Part shown: positions 2,842-21,000 of the stretch, one piece after another | Layout: every line of letters begins with the position of its first letter | Position numbering within the stretch: position 1 is the stretch's first letter | Assembly: GCA_964247055.1 (NCBI GenBank) | Contig: OZ176055.1 | Coordinates: forward strand, 5,270,001 to 5,334,000 | DNA: 64,000 bases | Direction of reading: 5' to 3' | DNA from: Paragordius varius | Lineage: Eukaryota; Animalia; Nematomorpha | Translations under genes and position numbers: made by a program | The notes under the pieces: model-generated | What the model was told of the DNA's origin: nothing | What the model saw: the letters and a program-made list of their open reading frames with translations, nothing else | Database searches by the model: none

Positions 2842-5006
2842 TATTTTAATGATTCAGCAATAAAAATTATACAATGATTATGTTTGTATTTATTTATCTG
2901 ATCTAAAATGTAATTTCCCGAGACTAATAGTGATAATTGGGAGGCTAAAATATATAATAAAAAATAGGAAATATATTAAAATATAATACCATGTTTGGAG
3001 TTTTGGTTACTTTTCCTTTTAGCGCAGAGGATATTTTTGCCAACTCATCCATTTTTTTAAAAACAACTAAAAATTTGAATGCGAAATATATAATTTTTGT
3101 TTAATTGGATATTAAAAATTAATTGATTTAAATTGTATACCAGTTGTTACATCTAAAGGTGAAAAAAATATTATGTAAAAAGAGATTTTTATATAAATTG
3201 GTTTCATCGATATTTCCATTTTAAATATTTTAATTTTACTATATTTTTATGATTAGATATGTACTACGGTTAATTACAATATGAGTAAGTATGAATAGTT
3301 AGAAAGTTATTATTAATTGCCAAATAGCATAAACAACAAAGGGCAGTATTATTGACTTATAGTTATTTTTCACTTTTTACTATTCTTAATTATTCTCTTT
3401 GCTGCATATGCTATTGGCAATAATTATTAATTTTCTAGCAAGTATTCTTAATCACACTGTATATGTTTTTTATAAGCCAGTATTATTAATATCAACGACA
3501 GTATTTACTGAAGATATTATAAATTTAATTAATAAGCTCATTTTAGGACGCAACCGTCAGAGGGCCGAAACAGTGATAGGTAATCAAATATAAATTAGAT
3601 TAGAAAATAAAACTATTTAAGAATATATTTTAAAATCAATTTGAGCTTGTGAGCTTTACGACCACAGGATTATACGGAAAAATGTATTGAATAATAACTA
3701 TATGTTTATAAAATATAATTTAAATAGCAAATCCAATAATTTAATTTGAGGTTTTATTAAAATAATTTAGAACTTATAAAATTTGATTAAAGCAGTTATT
3801 TTTAATATTTACCAGCATTTACTTAGCTATGTTTTAAGAAAATAATAAAATGTTTTCACAAACCAATTTCCAGTTAAAATTAATTAGACTTTTTCCGATT
3901 TCCTACCAAAAGTATTTGTAAAATATAACCAAATCTCTATTAATAACGGTCACTATTTCATTACGTAAACACTATTTAAATTCAAATAAATTAATAAAAT
4001 TGCCTATATTAATAATTGATCATACCCCATAAATCAGTCTCCGGATCTAATCGGATTTTTTCTTTGATTACTAATAAAAAAAATTTATAGTCAGATAAAA
4101 TTTAGAGAGATGCGATTATTTAGGTTTATTTAAATGAAATAGGACAGTGATAATTTTTATCAACTTTTAAGGCACATCTTATAAAATAGTAATTAAACTC
4201 GGAATTTAGCAAAATAACTTTTAAAGCTTAACAATTAAATACGGAACGACTAAAAATAGACTGGCTAAAAGAATTAATTTTAAGTTTGCATAGATATTTT
4301 AGCTAAAAATAGCCCTAATCATATATTTTTTAATGTAATTCTTGGTTCTAGTGGTTTATGAGTAGGAAACGTAAATACTTACAATTGTTTACACAATCTA
4401 TGGTACTTAGTTTACAATCTGAATTTTTTTTAATAATAATTTATGACGGTTAATATATAGCACACATGTGATTGATATGCTAACTATAATAGCAAGTCGT
4501 TAAAACAAAAGAAAAATGGATACGCTTAAATTCTCGCATGTCAAAATTATTTTCTACCAGTTTTTTTTAAATATGCCCAAATTAATTTTTTATTTAATTT
4601 TTTATATAAGCTATAAATAAATACCATCTTTCAGGCCATGTATAGTCACACCTATAAAAACAAAAATATGTTTTAGTATGTATTGTAACCACAAATACAA
4701 ATTAATTTTTTATTTATGCAATCCTATAATTTCCCTTTTAATAATGATAACCCCATTTTTTAAGAGATTATTGGAAAAATAGATTTTAATGAATAAATTG
4801 CGCATTTGATTTTGCCGTTATCAAGTATGCGCTCCAGCTCTCTTCAATAGTCAAATTTGTGGAATAACAATTTAAGATTAGCTTTTAAAATTTTAGAAAA
4901 ATACATGGCAAATAATCCTTTATCGTCTAAATCAAGTAATAAATCATTAATATTTTAGCGAGATCAAAAAATATTTTACTCCAGTTAACTATCAACTTGC
5001 AAGAAC

Positions 5007-5182: not shown

Positions 5183-7133
5183 CACTAAATATCATCTAAT
5201 AATACATTTGTCCTAATAAGCCGCACAAAAGTTACATAGTAATTTTGACGCGAAACAAAAGAAATCATATAATTAATAATACCTTTGTGTGACGGTGCCA
5301 TTATAACTAATCATAAAATAATAAGTAAATAAAATAATATAACAAAAAAATAAAAATACTTACAAACTGGGAGTTTCTTTGTAGAATCTTTTATGCGAAT
5401 TTCTATAATTTAATTAAATACATGATATATAATTTTAACAAAAATTATATCAACTAATGCATTTCATGCAATATACAATTTATACACCTTGTATTACCGC
5501 CTAACAAGCTTTAGGTCGGATCAAGAATTATTCTTACTGAATTTAATAATTATCGTACACGGTGGTGTTGATATATTATTCGATAGCGAACAATATAAGA
5601 GATACAAAATGATCGATTCATTTAAAACGCTGGAAAAGAGTTTTTATTATTCGATTATTGCCCAAAATCAAACAATATCTTTTTCTCACTCATTGAGTTG
5701 AATAAAAAGAAATGTAATGGGAAGTTTCAGCTAATTTTTATTTGTTACTAAATTTTTCAGGTAATGCATCTTACAGTGTTTATTACTTAAAAATCCTCAA
5801 TATACATTTTAAAAATTGATGTTAAATATTTTCTACTTATGATTTCGGTTTTCAGGGATAAAAACTTGTCAAATTATATTATCGATAGTTGCTTAATCAA
5901 AATAGATATGAAAATATTTCATATGTATATTTTGTAGAAATAAACAACATTTCCGCTAAGATTAAATTAGTTAAATATGCTTAATTTAAATTTGATTGAT
6001 TTGCAAACCGTAGTCGGACCAAAGTGTCACCCCTTATTTGTGAGAAAATACAATTTTCACAATCATAACTTTAAATTAAAATTTTTTCCAGCAAAGTGGT
6101 GTTTTAATAAACCAGGTTTTTTCACACCTAGTCACAAATTCAATGACTGTAATTAATATAAGACTTACGTTTATAAAAAATTAAGAAAAAAACCTCGAAA
6201 CACATCTTTAAAAATCGTAAATTGTACATACCGATCGAGACTAAATCATAATGATCTATAACGATAAAATAAACGGTAATAATTTGTATAAAATAATATG
6301 CATCATAATTATATCTACAATAATGAATAATATGGCCGCTTTGCGCATCTATTTAGCACCCTAGTATATGATTGAGAAAAGCGATATTCCAGCTGACTGA
6401 TAGATTAATTAAAGATATCCATATATTTTAAGACATGAAATTAGATTATAATACTAAAATGCTTTAATCAGAAACTTTCAAAATTTAAATGTGATCTGGT
6501 AAAAAAATCAACGCCCAATTTTTATTTCTTATTCATAACGTATTATTTATACAACTTAATTAGCAAACACACAGAATAATATTAATGTCAAAATACGTCA
6601 AAAATCTTCTGTAAAAAAATTATTCATATAACATGGTATGCCTAAAAATAATTTAGAAGAAACAACAAAAATCGTCTTTAGGGGCAAAAGTATTTATGCG
6701 GAAACAATGATAAGCGCGATTGAGCACATGATGGACATTTAAAATATAATTATATCAGATAAATTAATTACCTCCGAATTTTTCTTTGTGTTCTAATGAA
6801 AAATTTATTTTATAAAATTTAAATGATATTGTTGTATTTATAAGTTAAAATTTCTCAAAATATATATTGGAACATTATTAAGTATATTAGAAAAGGGGCC
6901 AATAGGATTATACTAAATGCAATATAATTTTAAGCAAGTAATACGCATAGTTTACATTTAATATCGCCTAAAAGATGGAAAAAAATAATACAATTATATC
7001 CTTAATTTAATGGCCTTAAGGTTTGGTGAATACGGAAAAACATCCTCAATTCCTTATTTCACACCAATTTAACAACCATGATAAATGAAAATTTGAAAAT
7101 ATGGGTTGACCTTAAGAAATAATTAGCCATTTA

Positions 7134-7412
7134 CAGTAAAAATTTAAATTATACGGACAAAACGTAAAAATATAAAGACAAATATTTTTATTTAAATAAC
7201 CATACTTTTTTAACCTTTATTCCTATATAAGCTATTTAGTTATGTAAGTAAAATTGATTGTGCTATTAATATTTCTCTATTCCCAACTTTACCATTTTAA
7301 ACAATGAGTTATTTTTTAAAAAATAAAACATTAAAAAGTGTGATTGTCTTTAAGAAAAATATGTTTGTCTTTATATTTTTACGTTTTGTCAGTATAATTT
7401 CAGTTTTTAATG
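7134..7412. mobile_element. Tc1/mariner-like foldback MITE
   Basis: ~80-bp inverted arms beginning TA-CAGTAAAAATTTAAATTATACGGACAAAACG; same family at 8387, 24336, 32042, 37675. Confidence 0.75.
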
Positions 7413-7750
7413 TACTTATAGAATTGCGTCTTAAAATTTTGATTTTATCTTGCATATTTTGCCATTATCATTTAATTCCGTAAATATATTTAATATACCG
7501 TGTAGGGTCCCATTCAGTGCTAAAAATAAAAGTATGTGCCATAGAATTTTTTTATATTAATGATAATAAAACAATTAAACAAATTTTACCACTTATGAAT
7601 TCTTGAAATATAGGATTTCTTTCAACATCTATATTATTTCAAACATAATATGTTAATAATATTTGGGCAATATTTAATGATCAAACATTCAAAAGAAATG
7701 TAAACTTTTAATCAAATATTTAATTTGCAAACCTAAAATCAAGTATAAAC

Positions 7751-13570: not shown

Positions 13571-16500
13571 CTAATAATCATCATAGTCTCCATGTCCACC
13601 ATAACTTTTATCAGGCTTATCAGGATTAAGCGTTATCAAATCATCAATCCGCAAAATGGTTATAGCAGCCTCAGTTGCAAATTTGATAGCCTTGATTTTA
13701 CTCACAGCAGGTTCTAAAATACCGGCAGTTTTATTATCTTTAATTGTTCCCTCCAACAAATCTAATCCAGACCTAGGAAAAATATGAATTTTATAAAAGA
13801 TTAAGCAGATAGCTTTTAACTCTATGCAAGAAAAAAATTGGGTTTGGAAATATATTACAACATAAAATATTAGCAGGTATTATGAAAAGAAAAATTGGAT
13901 GTGTAATTAATCTAACAATGTTAAATCTAGTTTTTCGTATAATAAAAATAATGGAAGTTTTTGTGAATTGTGAGGCAAAAAATACCATTTCCAACTCTCT
14001 TTATTGACATTTTGGCCAGCGCTCGTGTTTATTTTATCATTCTTTACCCCATGCCCCAAAGATGATGAGTGACCGTCATTACAAGTGTTGGGGTTATTGG
14101 TTTCATTAGTTGGCAACGATGATACAACATTGTTGGCAGTCGTTTTGAACGTTTGAGCCACATTGTGAAGAGCCCGGAGTCTAGAAACCAACTCGGTCGT
14201 ATCAAGTGCAGCATTAGTCGCCAAAGTTTTAGGGATAACTAATAGGGCATTCGCAAATTCAGCAATAGCAAGTTGTTCCCGACTGCTCTGTAAGATAGAT
14301 AGGGAATAATTTTATAAAAACATGTAAAAGTTATAAAGATTCCCTATGCTATTTTTGTTACATGGTTCAAATGTTAAAATATTAAAAAGTAAGATATATC
14401 TTACCAAATTAAATTATTTTATTTTATAGCTTTTATTTATGTTTCCAAATATCTTCAAATCCCTTCCAAAAATAGTCCTTACAATTTATCTCATCCAAAT
14501 AACAATTTTTTAAATTTAAAACAAATGAAAAACGCCGTTAAAGTTTAGCAAGCATGATAATCTTTTCAATGATTTTGAATAAAATTAATAAGGTATTATT
14601 CAATAAAGAAGAGTATAAATGATTTAAAGTAAAAAATGTATACTATGGATGTCGCAAAATGTTCCAAGTAAACGCTACAGGCCGTTTCTACACTCCCGCC
14701 ACCCGCAACCAGAGTTTTGCTTTCAAGGACTCTTTTGCAAACGCATAGGGCGTCATGTAATGAACGCTCGCATTCATCCAAAGCCGTGTCATTCGGTCCG
14801 CGCAGGATAATGCTAGCTGCCGTCCTGGCTTTTGGTCTAAATGAGATTTAAATAAAATATGTAAACTTGAATGTAAAAATAAGTTAATATTATATTAATC
14901 TATAATATAGCAATTACGGTTAATATTATTTGATTATATCTCTGTAGCATTTATTAATGGAAATAAATAATATTACCTTAAAATAACGGAATTAAAGATT
15001 TAAAGATGGTATACTATTTTTCAAAATTTTTAAGATATTATATTGATTATATAACAAGTGTCAAAAATATAGGTATTTCATATACTAAAAGAAAAAATCT
15101 TTACGGTAATTAAATATCATTATCGGCTTGAAATAATGATGAAAAAAATTCAAAAGCAAATCATTTTTTAAAAATAATAAAAACTTAACTTTTTGATGAT
15201 ATATTTACCCGTTTATCAAAATGAGTTCATCGTCGCACACACGTTTTTGAATAACTTCCTCGGCTTGACCCAAAAAGCTGTTTTCAAACGTTTCATCACC
15301 TTCCAAATTCGATAGACTGACAAGAAGCGTTGCTACATTAAAACAAAAACAATGATATATTTTTCGAACAATAACAATTGGTGATCTTCTTTTGTTTATA
15401 TAAACAAAATCTATCAAAAATTATATAAAAAAACGTATAAACCTATTTTTTTAAATCGATATGATACTTAATTAAATCCATTATAGAAAATAAACTTTAA
15501 GAAATACATTAGAATAATAATGATTGAATAAAATTTAAATGAAAATCATATACTACAAAAAATATACAATCTAAAAGTTCCAAATAAATTGAAATTTATT
15601 TTAAAGGAAAAAAAAACTAATATATAATTTTAGATAAAAAATATCTACATTAATTACCCCCCGTGGCCTTTGCGATACGTTTAAGATCTGCCTTTTTACA
15701 TCTGCGCACGGCCATACAACCGGCTTCGACGAACGGTTTGAGGCACAAATCATCGATTCCGCCAGTGGTTAGAACAACATTCGCACCTGCTGCAATGATC
15801 TTGTTTATCTTTTCACGAACCAAATCTATTTCTCTGCAGAAATTTTATAAGAATATATTTAAGAGTACATGAATAATTCAAATACATTAACAAAGTTTTG
15901 TATTTTGTATGGAGATTTAATAATAATTAAAAATATGTTATAGAAGTAGGACTTATAAATTAAAAAATTTACAAATTCGGTTAACCTAATTAAGTGTCGG
16001 ATATTATCAACATAAAGTTTTGCGATGTTATACATAAACAGCTAAGTTTTATTAAAAGATATCTTGCAATTAAACCTTTGACGAATATCTGACAATTTTT
16101 CTGGATCAGTAACTAAAACATGAACACCCATCGCCATTTTAGCCTTTTGTAAGCTAAAATCTAAACAAGCGATCCGAGCGTTAGTGACTTGCTTAGGCAT
16201 GGCTAAAATAAAAAAATGTTAAAATATTTTAGTAAAATTTAAAAAAAATATGGTTTAAAACTAAAATCCGAAGTGAAAGAATTATTAATTTGTATCACAA
16301 CAAAATATCCTTACCCTGTGAAGCGACAGTACAATTCAAGGCATAACCATGAATTAACATACTCTCCTTAAAGCTTTTCCCGTGACTCTTGAGAACATTA
16401 ATGCTCTTTATTGGGTATTTGTATTGACCAACCAATAAGGAATTGGCATCTTTGTTAGCTAATATGTTAAAAGAGGGATTTAAACCGGAACCAGTTTTTT

Positions 16501-17962
16501 TCAAAACCGTTATTACCAAAAAATACCAAAAACGATTCATCTTTTTATTTTTTAATACGATAGTAACCTTAAAAAATTTTAGTGTTTTTATCATTCGAAT
16601 TGTATATTTTCTTAAATTCTAATATATTTTATATTTTTGCGGCATTATTCAAATTATATCAAAAATGATATTAGTAAATAGAATAATTAGAAGCATTCAA
16701 AAAATAATGGAGGAAACAATTTTTTTTGCAGCCTGAACCGTTCCGTTCGAATAAGTGTGAATTAGAGACTAAAATTTAGTTAAAACCAAAACCAACGGTT
16801 CCGATCACTTTAAAAAATTATTGAATAGTTAGGCACACTATATGTTCTGAAAAAATCAACTCACTTGAAGCGTTAGTGATTGATGAAGTTAGACCGCTTC
16901 CCACATGAGCGTTAGAAATGCCGGATATTGCTCCAGAATTGGCGTGATCGGGAAATCTCACGGCAAAACACGCATCAACAACAATCGTGGCAAAATAATT
17001 AACGATTTCGGGACCGCCTAAAACATATAATAAAATTATAAATATAATTTTTTTAAGCGTCTTTGTAAGTACCGATTTATTTATTTGGTTATAACAATAT
17101 TCAAAAAATTGATGATGAATAATTCAAATAAATTTTATTTAGATGTTAATTTATTAAACAAGCTATGAAACAAATACATCGGTATTCAAAAAAGATATTT
17201 AAATAAAAATAAAGCACGATATCCCCAAAATAATTCGGCATTATTGTTAACTTATATTAGCACGGTTTAATAGATGGTAGAGTTAAAAAATTTAATTGAT
17301 TAACCTAATAATTTGCTAGCTAAACTAGTTCGAGCACAAGCAAGTATCGCTTCCATTCCCAATGATTCAACGGGTATTATCAATTGTTCTTTGATATATT
17401 TACAGGCTTCCTTAGCTGCTAAACGGTAGCCACTGATGATAGAAGTCGGATGAATTTTCCATTGTATTAAAGTTTCTGCTCGTTTGAGGAGTTCGGCAGC
17501 TATGATAACCTACATGAAACAAATTTTAAACAATCAAACATGTATAACGCTTTATAAATGAATAATATATATGAATACTTACAACTGAGGTAGTTCCGTC
17601 GCCAACTTCTTGATCCTGCAGGTCGGCTAATTCAACCAAAATTTTGGCCGCCGGATGTTCAACCTCCAAGAGTTTCAAAATAGTGGCTCCATCATTTGTA
17701 ATTGTTACATCCTATTAAAAAAATAAAATAGTTAGCGTAATAAAATAAAGGGGTAAAAAGTCATAAGAAAAGACATGATTACTCCAATGTCATCAACTAG
17801 CATTTTGTCCAATCCCACAGGTCCTAAACTACTTTTAACTATATTGGCTATGGTCTTGCACGCAGTCACTATAATTTAACAAATTTTTATACCATTTTGA
17901 CTTCTAATATCCCGACCAGAAGTCCTGTTACCATCGAGCATGAGTGAAGTGAGAGACGCCAT
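13571..17962 (-). CDS. TCP1: T-complex protein 1 subunit alpha (CCT1), 12 exons, 636 aa: 17962-17893, 17868-17783, 17711-17583, 17509-17305, 17017-16865, 16458-16315, 16202-16076, 15833-15658, 15332-15209, 14836-14644, 14287-13986, 13772-13571
   Basis: [75 protein letters not shown]; all junctions GT-AG and in frame. Confidence 0.97.
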
Positions 17963-18006
17963 TATAAAGTTAAACAAATGTTTTAATAAAAAATTCAAAA
18001 TTTGAC
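17963..18006. promoter_or_regulatory. 44-bp divergent spacer between TCP1 and DDX23 start codons; TATAAA at 17963-17968 on +
   Basis: TCP1 ATG (minus) at 17962-17960 and DDX23 ATG at 18007; in-frame TAA at 17971 upstream of DDX23 ATG. Confidence 0.7.
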
Positions 18007-21000
18007 ATGCCCGAAGTTATTGATTTGGATGATAAACCTGATACTGTAGACGAAATTGATTTAACAACTGTTGATGACAAAGAAATTAAAGAATCAAGTT
18101 ATGATAAGTCCAAACGGTATATTAAATTTTTTTACCGAAAATGATTTTCTGCTTCATATTCAATATTTTTTAATTTTTAGTTCTCCTCACAAACAAAAAA
18201 AGGAGAAAAAACATAGGGATCATAATAATGACAGGAAGCGTCATAAACCAGATAGAGAGGAAAGATACTCATCCCATTCAGGGAATAATCGTTCCAGTGA
18301 TTCTATAAGTCATCATAGAAAGGAGCGTTTTCATGAGCCTTCTTACCATAGACATGTTGCAAATGATATTCGTCACCAAGAATACATTGATAGAAATAAT
18401 TCTTACCAACAAACACGTGATAAAAGTTCCCACTCCACCCGTTATGAAGAAAAGCATAACAGAGATAACAAAAGTCCAATTAATCAAAAATCTAGCACAA
18501 AGTCACAAACTACTCACGAAAACCGGTGTGAAGATCAAAAAAGTAAGGATAATACCCAAAAAACTGACAAACCAGATATACATAAATCTGCTACCGTTCA
18601 CTCCCATTCTACTGACGATAATAATAATAATACAAAAACCAAGAAAAAATCTTCTAAAGATAAAAAGAAACCCAAAATAAAGGATCCACCTAAAGATGTA
18701 TCAGAACCAACCGATTTTACGAACAACGATATTGTAAGAACCAAAAGAGTTCCATTGTCGCTTGATGAATTATTAGCTAAGAAGAAAGCTGAAGAAGAAA
18801 CACTAAGCAAAGTATTACGATTAATATATAACTGGTAAATTAATATATTGCAAGATATGAAATGGTACTCATGATTTTATTATAAATGTAAGATAAAAGT
18901 ATTCTTTCTTTTCTATATACTTTTAACATTATACTTGTTAATGCAAGGAATCACATCTTAATCGTTTATTAAATCGCGTAACTATTAAAACGCTTTAAAT
19001 ATTACTTTGTTAAAAAACTTGTAAATATTTTACATAATATTATTTACCAATGGTTATAAATAATTTGTTTTTTAATAGATTGCAATAAATGGTTTTATTG
19101 GCAATGCTCAGTTTTATCTTGATTAATAAAAGCTATTTGTATGTTTCAGCCCAAATTTTTGACAAAAGAAGAACGAGTAGCATTGGCTCTTAAGCGAAGA
19201 GAAGAGGTAGTCGCTCTTAAACGCCAGGAACAAGAAGAAACTCGCAAAAAACAGCAAGAGTTCCTAAAACAGGCTACTTTATCTACTGGTACGTTCTATA
19301 ATTAAATTGTAATCTAAAATGTTGTCAGATTTATAGTATGCAGTAGTTATATTTTACAAAATTTATGTAAATTTCGCGTAAAATGTATAGTTGTATTTTA
19401 TCGCTGCAAACTTACAAAAATAATGTTTTGAATATATTTGGTTATTTTAGGCATATTTAACACGCAATAATTATTTTGTATTTAAAACTATTGCAAGAAT
19501 TAATATTTTAAGGTTTTGACACATAACCACTTTCTCCAATAAGTGTATTGAGTTACAGTCTTATAAACAATTAATACAGGGATAAACATACGGAACCAAT
19601 TATTGCTTATATAATTTAATTTACAATCCAGACATTTTTAATATGAAACATATGTTAAACCGTCACAGTAATAATATTAATATGATCAAAATAATACGTT
19701 TAAATTTTTAGAGCTCTGGGTAAAACTGCCCCAATATGTCATTGTGGACAAAAAAAGTGAAAAGGTCACGAAGTGTTAAAGTCAGTTTAAAAAAGAAACC
19801 ATATTTTTAAAATTTGATTCATAAGTAACCTATCTTTTTTTGGATACAAAGTAAGAAAAAGATGTGTATGGTAACGCATCTAATTTTAGTTTTCACAATT
19901 GTAATAATATAGAGTGCGTGAAATAGTGAAGAAATATGGTTTTTTATTAATATAAAAATAAAACATTAGTTTTATTTTGTAGAGGAATTTTATTTTAGAT
20001 GTAAAATGTATAATTATATTGGATCTATGATTCTTTATTTAAATAATTAAAAATAAAAATGTAAAGAGCTATGCTATAAGTTTTTATTTTAAATTATTTA
20101 ATCGATAAAGGATCATGATTATTTAGATGCGAAATATTTTATTTTTGTTAATCTAATTAACTACTTTGGTTCCTTATATACGAGTTATTTTATATATTTA
20201 ATGTATTAGAAACACCTTATGAGCGCGAACGCAGAGAAAGGCGAGAGCGCAGAGAACGCGAACAAGCCGAAGAAGAAATGGAAAGGAACAAAATTAAGGA
20301 GGAAAAGGACAAAGACAAGGAACTAAATGCCATCAAGGTTATATTAGTTTTGCAAAAATGCTTGTAATTAAATATATAAAATATTTTTTTTAAGAAATAT
20401 ATACCTTTAAATCTATTCAATATACAAGTTAAAAATAATCTATGTAACCTCAATGGGAGTCTTTGGTTACCAGTTTCACGTATTTCTCAAAAAAACGGTA
20501 CCGGACCAATTGTTTCCGTTCTATTTGCGAATAATATAAGTTTTGATTTAAACATCTAATATTTTGGATATTGTTTCAATTTCTTAAATTTACAGATACC
20601 TTATTTTTAATACAACCAAAAAAATGTTTTTTGAAAAGTTAAATATATATTTTATATAAAATAGTAAACATACAAAACAATATAAATTTTAGTATTAAAA
20701 TGATATAAATATATATATATATATATATATAGTTTTGAACCCCGGTCTCGGTTTTAAAACGATTATGGAAGCATTTTATACAAACCATGGTTATAAAACA
20801 ATTTTTTAATTTATAAACGGTCTAAAAGAGCTATAGAATATATTATATTATTTGTTTTTTAGGAGAAATATTTGGGCATGTTAAAAAAGAAGAAAAGGGC
20901 TCGTCGATTAAATGAACGCAAATTTGTTTTTGATTGGGATGCGACAGAAGACACTTCTACAGATTATAATCCCATTTATAAAGAAAGACACGATCTACTC

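Follow-up and report, generated by a model that had tools for sequence, protein, structure and literature searches.

A segment of 24 nt close to the 5' end of the essential chaperonin gene TCP1 (CCT-alpha) in the horsehair worm Paragordius varius (minus strand, 17892-17869) is very probably a genuine GT-AG spliceosomal intron, which is ancient, has shrunk and is the first of eleven introns in an intact, single TCP1 gene. Six observations made directly on the DNA bear on this reading, namely the sequence of the segment, the collinearity of the exons on both its sides with CCT-alpha, the integrity of the gene, the ancestral position of the intron, the occurrence of the same class of introns in CCT paralogues and the finding of U1 and U2 snRNA genes. 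All positions refer to the window, i.e. the whole stretch of DNA that was analysed, with a length of 64,000 nt.

Background

Introns under about 30 bp had been thought to be absent from animals (Hadjez et al. 2026, PMC13644364). In 51 animal genomes, introns shorter than 30 nt were found only in myxobolid Myxozoa, which are cnidarians, and in the dicyemid Dicyema japonicum. The 5' signal of these tiny introns has dwindled to GTa, and their AG is preceded by a few A residues (PMC13644364). Nematomorpha are not mentioned in the main text of that study (PMC13644364). Our literature searches on short introns in hairworms did not find a paper.

Structure and identity of the TCP1 gene

The exons of TCP1 were placed by means of the NCBIfam model TIGR02340 and of a CCT-alpha HMM, which we built from 41 full-length ORFs out of environmental CCT-alpha loci. 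One environmental contig with a vertebrate-like CCT-alpha ORF (L031), which we do not regard as human, was left out of all comparisons, including the alignments and the HMM. The gene lies on the minus strand and consists of the following parts.

17893-17962, minus strand: exon 1, 70 nt (ATG, 22 codons and the first base of a Val codon), 46% GC
17869-17892, minus strand: intron 1, 24 nt, GT..AG, phase 1, with an in-frame TAA, 12% GC
17783-17868, minus strand: exon 2, 86 nt, matching PDB TCP1-alpha chains (E=2.8e-9), TIGR02340 positions 19-46 and HMM positions 24-54
17712-17782, minus strand: intron 2, 71 nt, GTAATC..AATAG, with CTAAC inside
17583-17711, minus strand: exon 3, 129 nt, matching TIGR02340 positions 47-89 (E=5.6e-23) and HMM positions 53-98
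13571-17582, minus strand: remainder of the gene, with intron 3 (73 nt), exons 4-12 and introns 4-11
13571-13573, minus strand: stop codon TAG

In this model none of the 12 exons contains an in-frame stop and all 11 introns are GT..AG, with lengths, from 5' to 3', of 24, 71, 73, 287, 406, 112, 242, 325, 372, 356 and 213 nt. The coding sequence, counted exon by exon from the coordinates, measures 1911 nt and comprises 636 codons and the TAG stop. The GC content amounts to 36-51% in the exons and 12-26% in the introns. Behind the split Val codon, the coding letters of exon 2 begin at 17866 and specify 28 residues, and the exon pieces that follow exon 3 cover HMM positions 96-542 in order.

The gene had been named TCP1 from the letters alone, with introns of 71 to about 400 nt next to the tiny one, and both statements hold: exon 2 matches the TCP1-alpha chains in PDB, TIGR02340 is the best-scoring NCBIfam subunit model for exons 2 and 3 (the sole exons with subunit scores), there is a single locus of this kind, and the other ten introns measure 71-406 nt. 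A genome-wide profile search of the 110.6-Mb assembly returned one alpha locus, the pieces of which span positions 2-535 of the 536 of TIGR02340 in order, while all further matches of this model in the genome lie in the seven paralogous subunits, except for one to a distant CCT-like ORF. The same search returned no intron-less TCP1 retrocopies. The 301-nt region around intron 1 is unique in the assembly, and a word search with exon 4 gave no match above 68% identity, thus no fragments from the same species or a close relative. Summed over the exons, TCP1 scored about 855-873 bits, compared to 960-1095 bits for many other CCT-alphas in local trials.

The predicted protein is longer than the references (636 residues compared to 540-560) and carries two lineage-specific insertions, one of about 25 aa in exon 5 (16865-17017) and one in exon 11 (13986-14287) that has many N, S and T residues and a length of about 45 aa. 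Only 44 nt (17963-18006) separate the ATG of TCP1 (17962, minus strand) from the ATG of a divergent plus-strand gene at 18007, and therefore the 5' UTRs of both genes must be tiny or overlap. The N-terminus encoded by this neighbour is rich in K, R and S, and it was called DDX23 in the sequence-only reading.

The 24-nt segment interrupts the TCP1 reading frame

Read on the minus strand, positions 17892-17869 are GTATAAAAATTTGTTAAATTATAG, 24 nt with the termini GTATAA..TTATAG, and they stand in the context AGA AGT CAA AAT G | GTATAAAAATTTGTTAAATTATAG | TG ACT GCG TGC AAG, i.e. between codons 23 and 24 of TCP1. When exon 1, the 24 nt and exon 2 are translated in one go, an in-frame TAA is met, and when the 24 nt are taken out, the split codon G|TG restores Val. 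The predicted spliced junction (17893/17868) reads ..CAAAATG|TGACTGCG... Coordinates, sequence and stop codon all agree with what the sequence-only reading had reported. That the segment has to be removed to obtain collinearity with CCT1 was likewise confirmed, since the HMM is matched at positions 4-24 and then 24-54, and since a single TIGR02340 piece crosses the segment, covering profile positions 2-48 with one TAA inside. The in-frame TAA and the collinearity with the profiles together make TCP1 legible only without the 24-nt segment. As an alternative we considered a 12-nt intron that starts at the internal GT, which was ruled out by the 4-residue insertion that would remain.

Exon 1 is genuine coding sequence

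Taken alone, exon 1 is too short a query and had no match in PDB or NCBIfam. Against the CCT-alpha HMM it scored 10.0 bits over positions 4-24, and the step from exon 1 to exon 2 neither skips nor adds a profile position. Ranked among the 2871 stop-free pieces of the window, exon 1 comes 11th behind ten other TCP1 exons, and the best unrelated piece attains 2.9 bits, compared to 10.0 for exon 1. None of the other pieces matches the N-terminal positions of the HMM, and not one of 5000 composition-preserving shuffles of exon 1 attained 10.0 bits. The match of exon 1 to CCT-alpha is far beyond chance. Given its significant similarity to CCT-alpha and its initial ATG, exon 1 is coding.

This bears on whether the segment could simply be kept in the mRNA, with translation starting further downstream, at the ATG for the M of LDKM, or with readthrough or recoding of the TAA, which would yield an 8-residue insertion. 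A length divisible by three and the finding of that ATG 17 codons into exon 2 would be in keeping with such retention, but it is hard to reconcile with a coding exon 1, with the count of 0 out of 41 full-length references that have an insertion between QN and V (neither profile has one either) and with the tiny introns of 23, 25, 26, 28 and 29 nt in the CCT paralogues, which would break the frame if they were retained. We consider retention very unlikely.

The intron position is old

The position of the intron was compared with six environmental loci, these being the ones in which pieces of both exon 1 and exon 2 were detectable. All six carry a GT..AG intron in phase 1, after ..QN/EN + G, inside the same Val codon, with the following lengths.

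Locus L077: orthologous intron of 293 nt
Locus L072: orthologous intron of 179 nt
Locus L057: orthologous intron of 93 nt
Locus L015: orthologous intron of 251 nt
Locus L014: orthologous intron of 386 nt
Locus L062: orthologous intron of 95 nt

The GC content of their contigs spans 38% to 68%, which indicates that the six loci come from unrelated organisms. An exon start at the same profile position was also found in L070, L074, L075, L080, L081, L063, L065 and L036. Moreover, most of the downstream TCP1 introns (at profile positions of about 53, 96, 165, 226, 268 and 327) coincide with introns of environmental loci. Whether the position is ancestral had been put forward as a check on the short intron, and it is ancestral, judged from the shared codon and phase in the six unrelated eukaryote loci. 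As these loci have introns of 93-386 nt at this site, the comparison points to an old phase-1 intron that shrank to 24 nt rather than to a newly inserted one. The segment thus resembles the ordinary intron 1 of TCP1/CCT-alpha in other eukaryotes in its place within the Val codon after QN/EN, its phase 1 and its GT..AG ends, and differs from it in length (24 nt in P. varius compared to 93-386 nt).

Homology of the site to these ordinary introns also speaks against removal by any other route than cis-splicing, be it somatic DNA elimination, comparable to that of ciliate IESs, or use of the AG at 17869 as a trans-splice acceptor. The size of the segment does resemble that of the smallest ciliate IESs, and the 44 nt between the divergent ATGs of TCP1 and its neighbour at 18007 would suit an unusual 5'-end formation. 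Its ends, however, are GT..AG and not TA..TA, and trans-splicing to the AG at 17869 would cause the conserved exon 1 to be lost, so that we attach only a very small probability to these routes.

Splice signals and the proposed mechanism of excision

In line with removal of the 24 nt by splicing, the genome encodes U1 snRNA (best match 124 bits, 5' end ACTTACCTG) and U2 snRNA (best match 178 bits, branch-binding sequence GTGTAGTA). Both are canonical, and the spliceosomal machinery looks ordinary. U2 gave 46 matches (38-178 bits) and U1 gave 17, mostly located in arrays (G000:C3:257000-528000; C2:11950000-11990000; C5:12727000-12788000; C6:565000-633000) and with many divergent copies.

Three features of intron 1 speak against its excision. 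The 5' splice site pairs with U1 at four positions only, namely G-1, G+1, U+2 and A+3. A strict yTnAy branch motif is absent from the 24 nt, where the strongest candidate for a branch point is TTAAA, the A residues of which lie 6-8 nt from the 3' end. The spacing of about 16 nt between the 5' splice site and this candidate branch point is far below the tolerance of most spliceosomes. No RNA structure that pairs the splice sites was found: the folding energy of the isolated intron is 0 kcal/mol, and with its flanks it reaches z=-1.18, 26 out of 200 shuffles folding as well.

Judged from the sequence, the 24 nt would be excised, presumably by the ordinary U2-type spliceosome, using a 5' splice signal that is cut down to GTA and the short run of A residues 6-8 nt before the AG as a putative branch point. 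If intron 1 were retained, the in-frame TAA would end translation after 30 codons. Shrinkage would have hit intron 1 alone, leaving the ten downstream introns at 71-406 nt, and intron 1 of TCP1 would be a member of a discrete class of 23-29 nt that is limited to the first 70 or so codons of genes in this genome.

Tiny introns across the CCT family

The occurrence of such introns was examined in TCP1 and its seven CCT paralogues in the same genome, which gave the following result for the paralogues.

CCT-zeta: tiny introns of 23 and 23 nt; TIGR02347 pieces 2-43, 45-65 and 66-125, the missing position 44 being the split codon
CCT-gamma: introns of 27, 28 and 36 nt; TIGR02344 pieces 1-26, a 17-aa exon filling 27-43, then 44-64 and 65-96
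CCT-delta: introns of 25 and 26 nt, read by eye and from HMM gaps; neither tiny junction has profile adjacency, as the one piece placed by the family scan lies downstream of the 26-nt intron (TIGR02342 38-67)
CCT-theta: intron of 29 nt, read by eye and from HMM gaps; only the downstream piece is placed (TIGR02346 43-69)
CCT-beta, CCT-eta and CCT-epsilon: no tiny introns; 5' introns of 56-84 nt

With tiny introns defined as those of 30 nt or shorter, the first 70 profile positions contained 17 junctions, 8 of which were tiny, compared to 0 of the 62 further down (Fisher p=9e-7; eight genes), junction gaps with an undetected exon being places where further tiny introns could be concealed. Tiny is not the predominant size, since it accounts for 8 of 79 CCT junctions and the median intron of TCP1 measures 242 nt, and in the CCT genes the tiny introns adjoin introns that reach about 3 kb. 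They begin with GTA or GTT, end in TAG in seven out of nine cases and have a GC content of 11-21%, and the yTnAy motif is present in some of them only.

Two of the paralogue introns, CCT-gamma intron 3 (36 nt, L086:3721-3756) and CCT-zeta intron 2 (23 nt, L085, minus strand, 4277-4299), occupy a homologous phase-0 site directly before the HPAAK/HPTA motif, and the intron at this site may predate the duplications that gave rise to the subunits. An uninterrupted ORF (L089:2819-3157, i.e. G000:C2:9750818-9751156) weakly matches the CCT profile over positions 8-116 (about 37-41 bits) and represents a divergent CCT-like gene outside the set of eight subunits.

The same pattern in four other CCT genes is difficult to explain if the 24 nt had been inserted into a pseudogene undergoing decay or were an artefact of the assembly, with the functional TCP1 located elsewhere or absent. 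The in-frame stop inside the segment would be in keeping with such decay, but no second alpha locus was found in 110.6 Mb, every one of the 12 exons is open and conserved, all 11 introns have GT..AG ends, and the segment, with its exact GT..AG ends, lies at an ancestral intron site. The argument, made earlier from the letters, that the tiny intron of TCP1 is not a sign of pseudogene decay is upheld, because the gene is intact and represents the only alpha copy, and decay or artefact is highly improbable.

The host genome

The nuclear genome has a GC content of 27%, which matches the 26.93% of an assembly of the hairworm Gordionus. The mitochondrial contig (C44, 15,693 nt, L096:1-10000 and L097:1-5693) encodes a COX1 with six TGA codons, contains an array of units of about 72 nt at 6752-7451 and is dense with perfect palindromes and inverted repeats, the arms of which reach 208 nt, with spacers of 0 nt. 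Palindromes of this kind have been published as a trait of Nematomorpha mtDNA (PMC6649704). The palindromes of the contig match this trait, and the host very probably is what it looks like, a hairworm.

Comparison with known ultra-short introns and implications

The closest known counterparts are the introns of myxobolids and Dicyema, which likewise are animal nuclear GT-AG introns (22-27 nt) at a conserved position between conserved exons, with a 5' signal of about GTA, 2-3 A residues before the AG, hardly any polypyrimidine tract and a canonical U2, and which also occur in parasitic hosts. In these animals, however, tiny introns are the norm (genome median 22-27 nt) and have short neighbours, whereas in P. 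varius, an ecdysozoan, 1 of the 11 TCP1 introns is tiny, the median is 242 nt and the tiny introns of the CCT genes lie within the first 70 or so codons. Outside animals, tiny introns are found in Paramecium (about 25 nt), in Stentor (15-16 nt; cited in PMC13644364) and in the Bigelowiella nucleomorph. The length class, the GT-AG ends and the premature stop or frameshift upon retention are shared with the ciliates and the nucleomorph; these, in contrast, are non-animal genomes that have almost only tiny introns, while P. varius mixes tiny and kilobase introns within genes.

We tentatively propose, as a possibility that we rate somewhat below even, that spliceosomal introns shorter than 30 nt evolved independently in a third animal lineage, the horsehair worms, and there form a discrete class restricted to the 5' ends of genes that otherwise keep kilobase introns. 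An ecdysozoan with such introns would be the third origin among animals and the most informative one. Tiny and ordinary introns occur in the same transcripts, so that one spliceosome would have to handle both a spacing of about 16 nt between 5' splice site and branch point and introns of kilobase length. If true, this would imply a cap-proximal or first-exon-dependent recognition of introns that are too short for the usual U1/U2 spacing.

Where gene finders impose a minimum intron length of about 30-40 nt, genes of this kind will come out truncated or frameshifted at their 5' ends. In this way tiny introns could lower the completeness scores of hairworm assemblies, e.g. the BUSCO score of 71.6% for a Gordionus assembly, and the low gene completeness reported for hairworm genomes would, if the proposal is true, partly be an annotation artefact. 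With a 24-nt intron and ten introns of 71-406 nt side by side in TCP1, the question of how small an intron can be becomes testable inside one gene.
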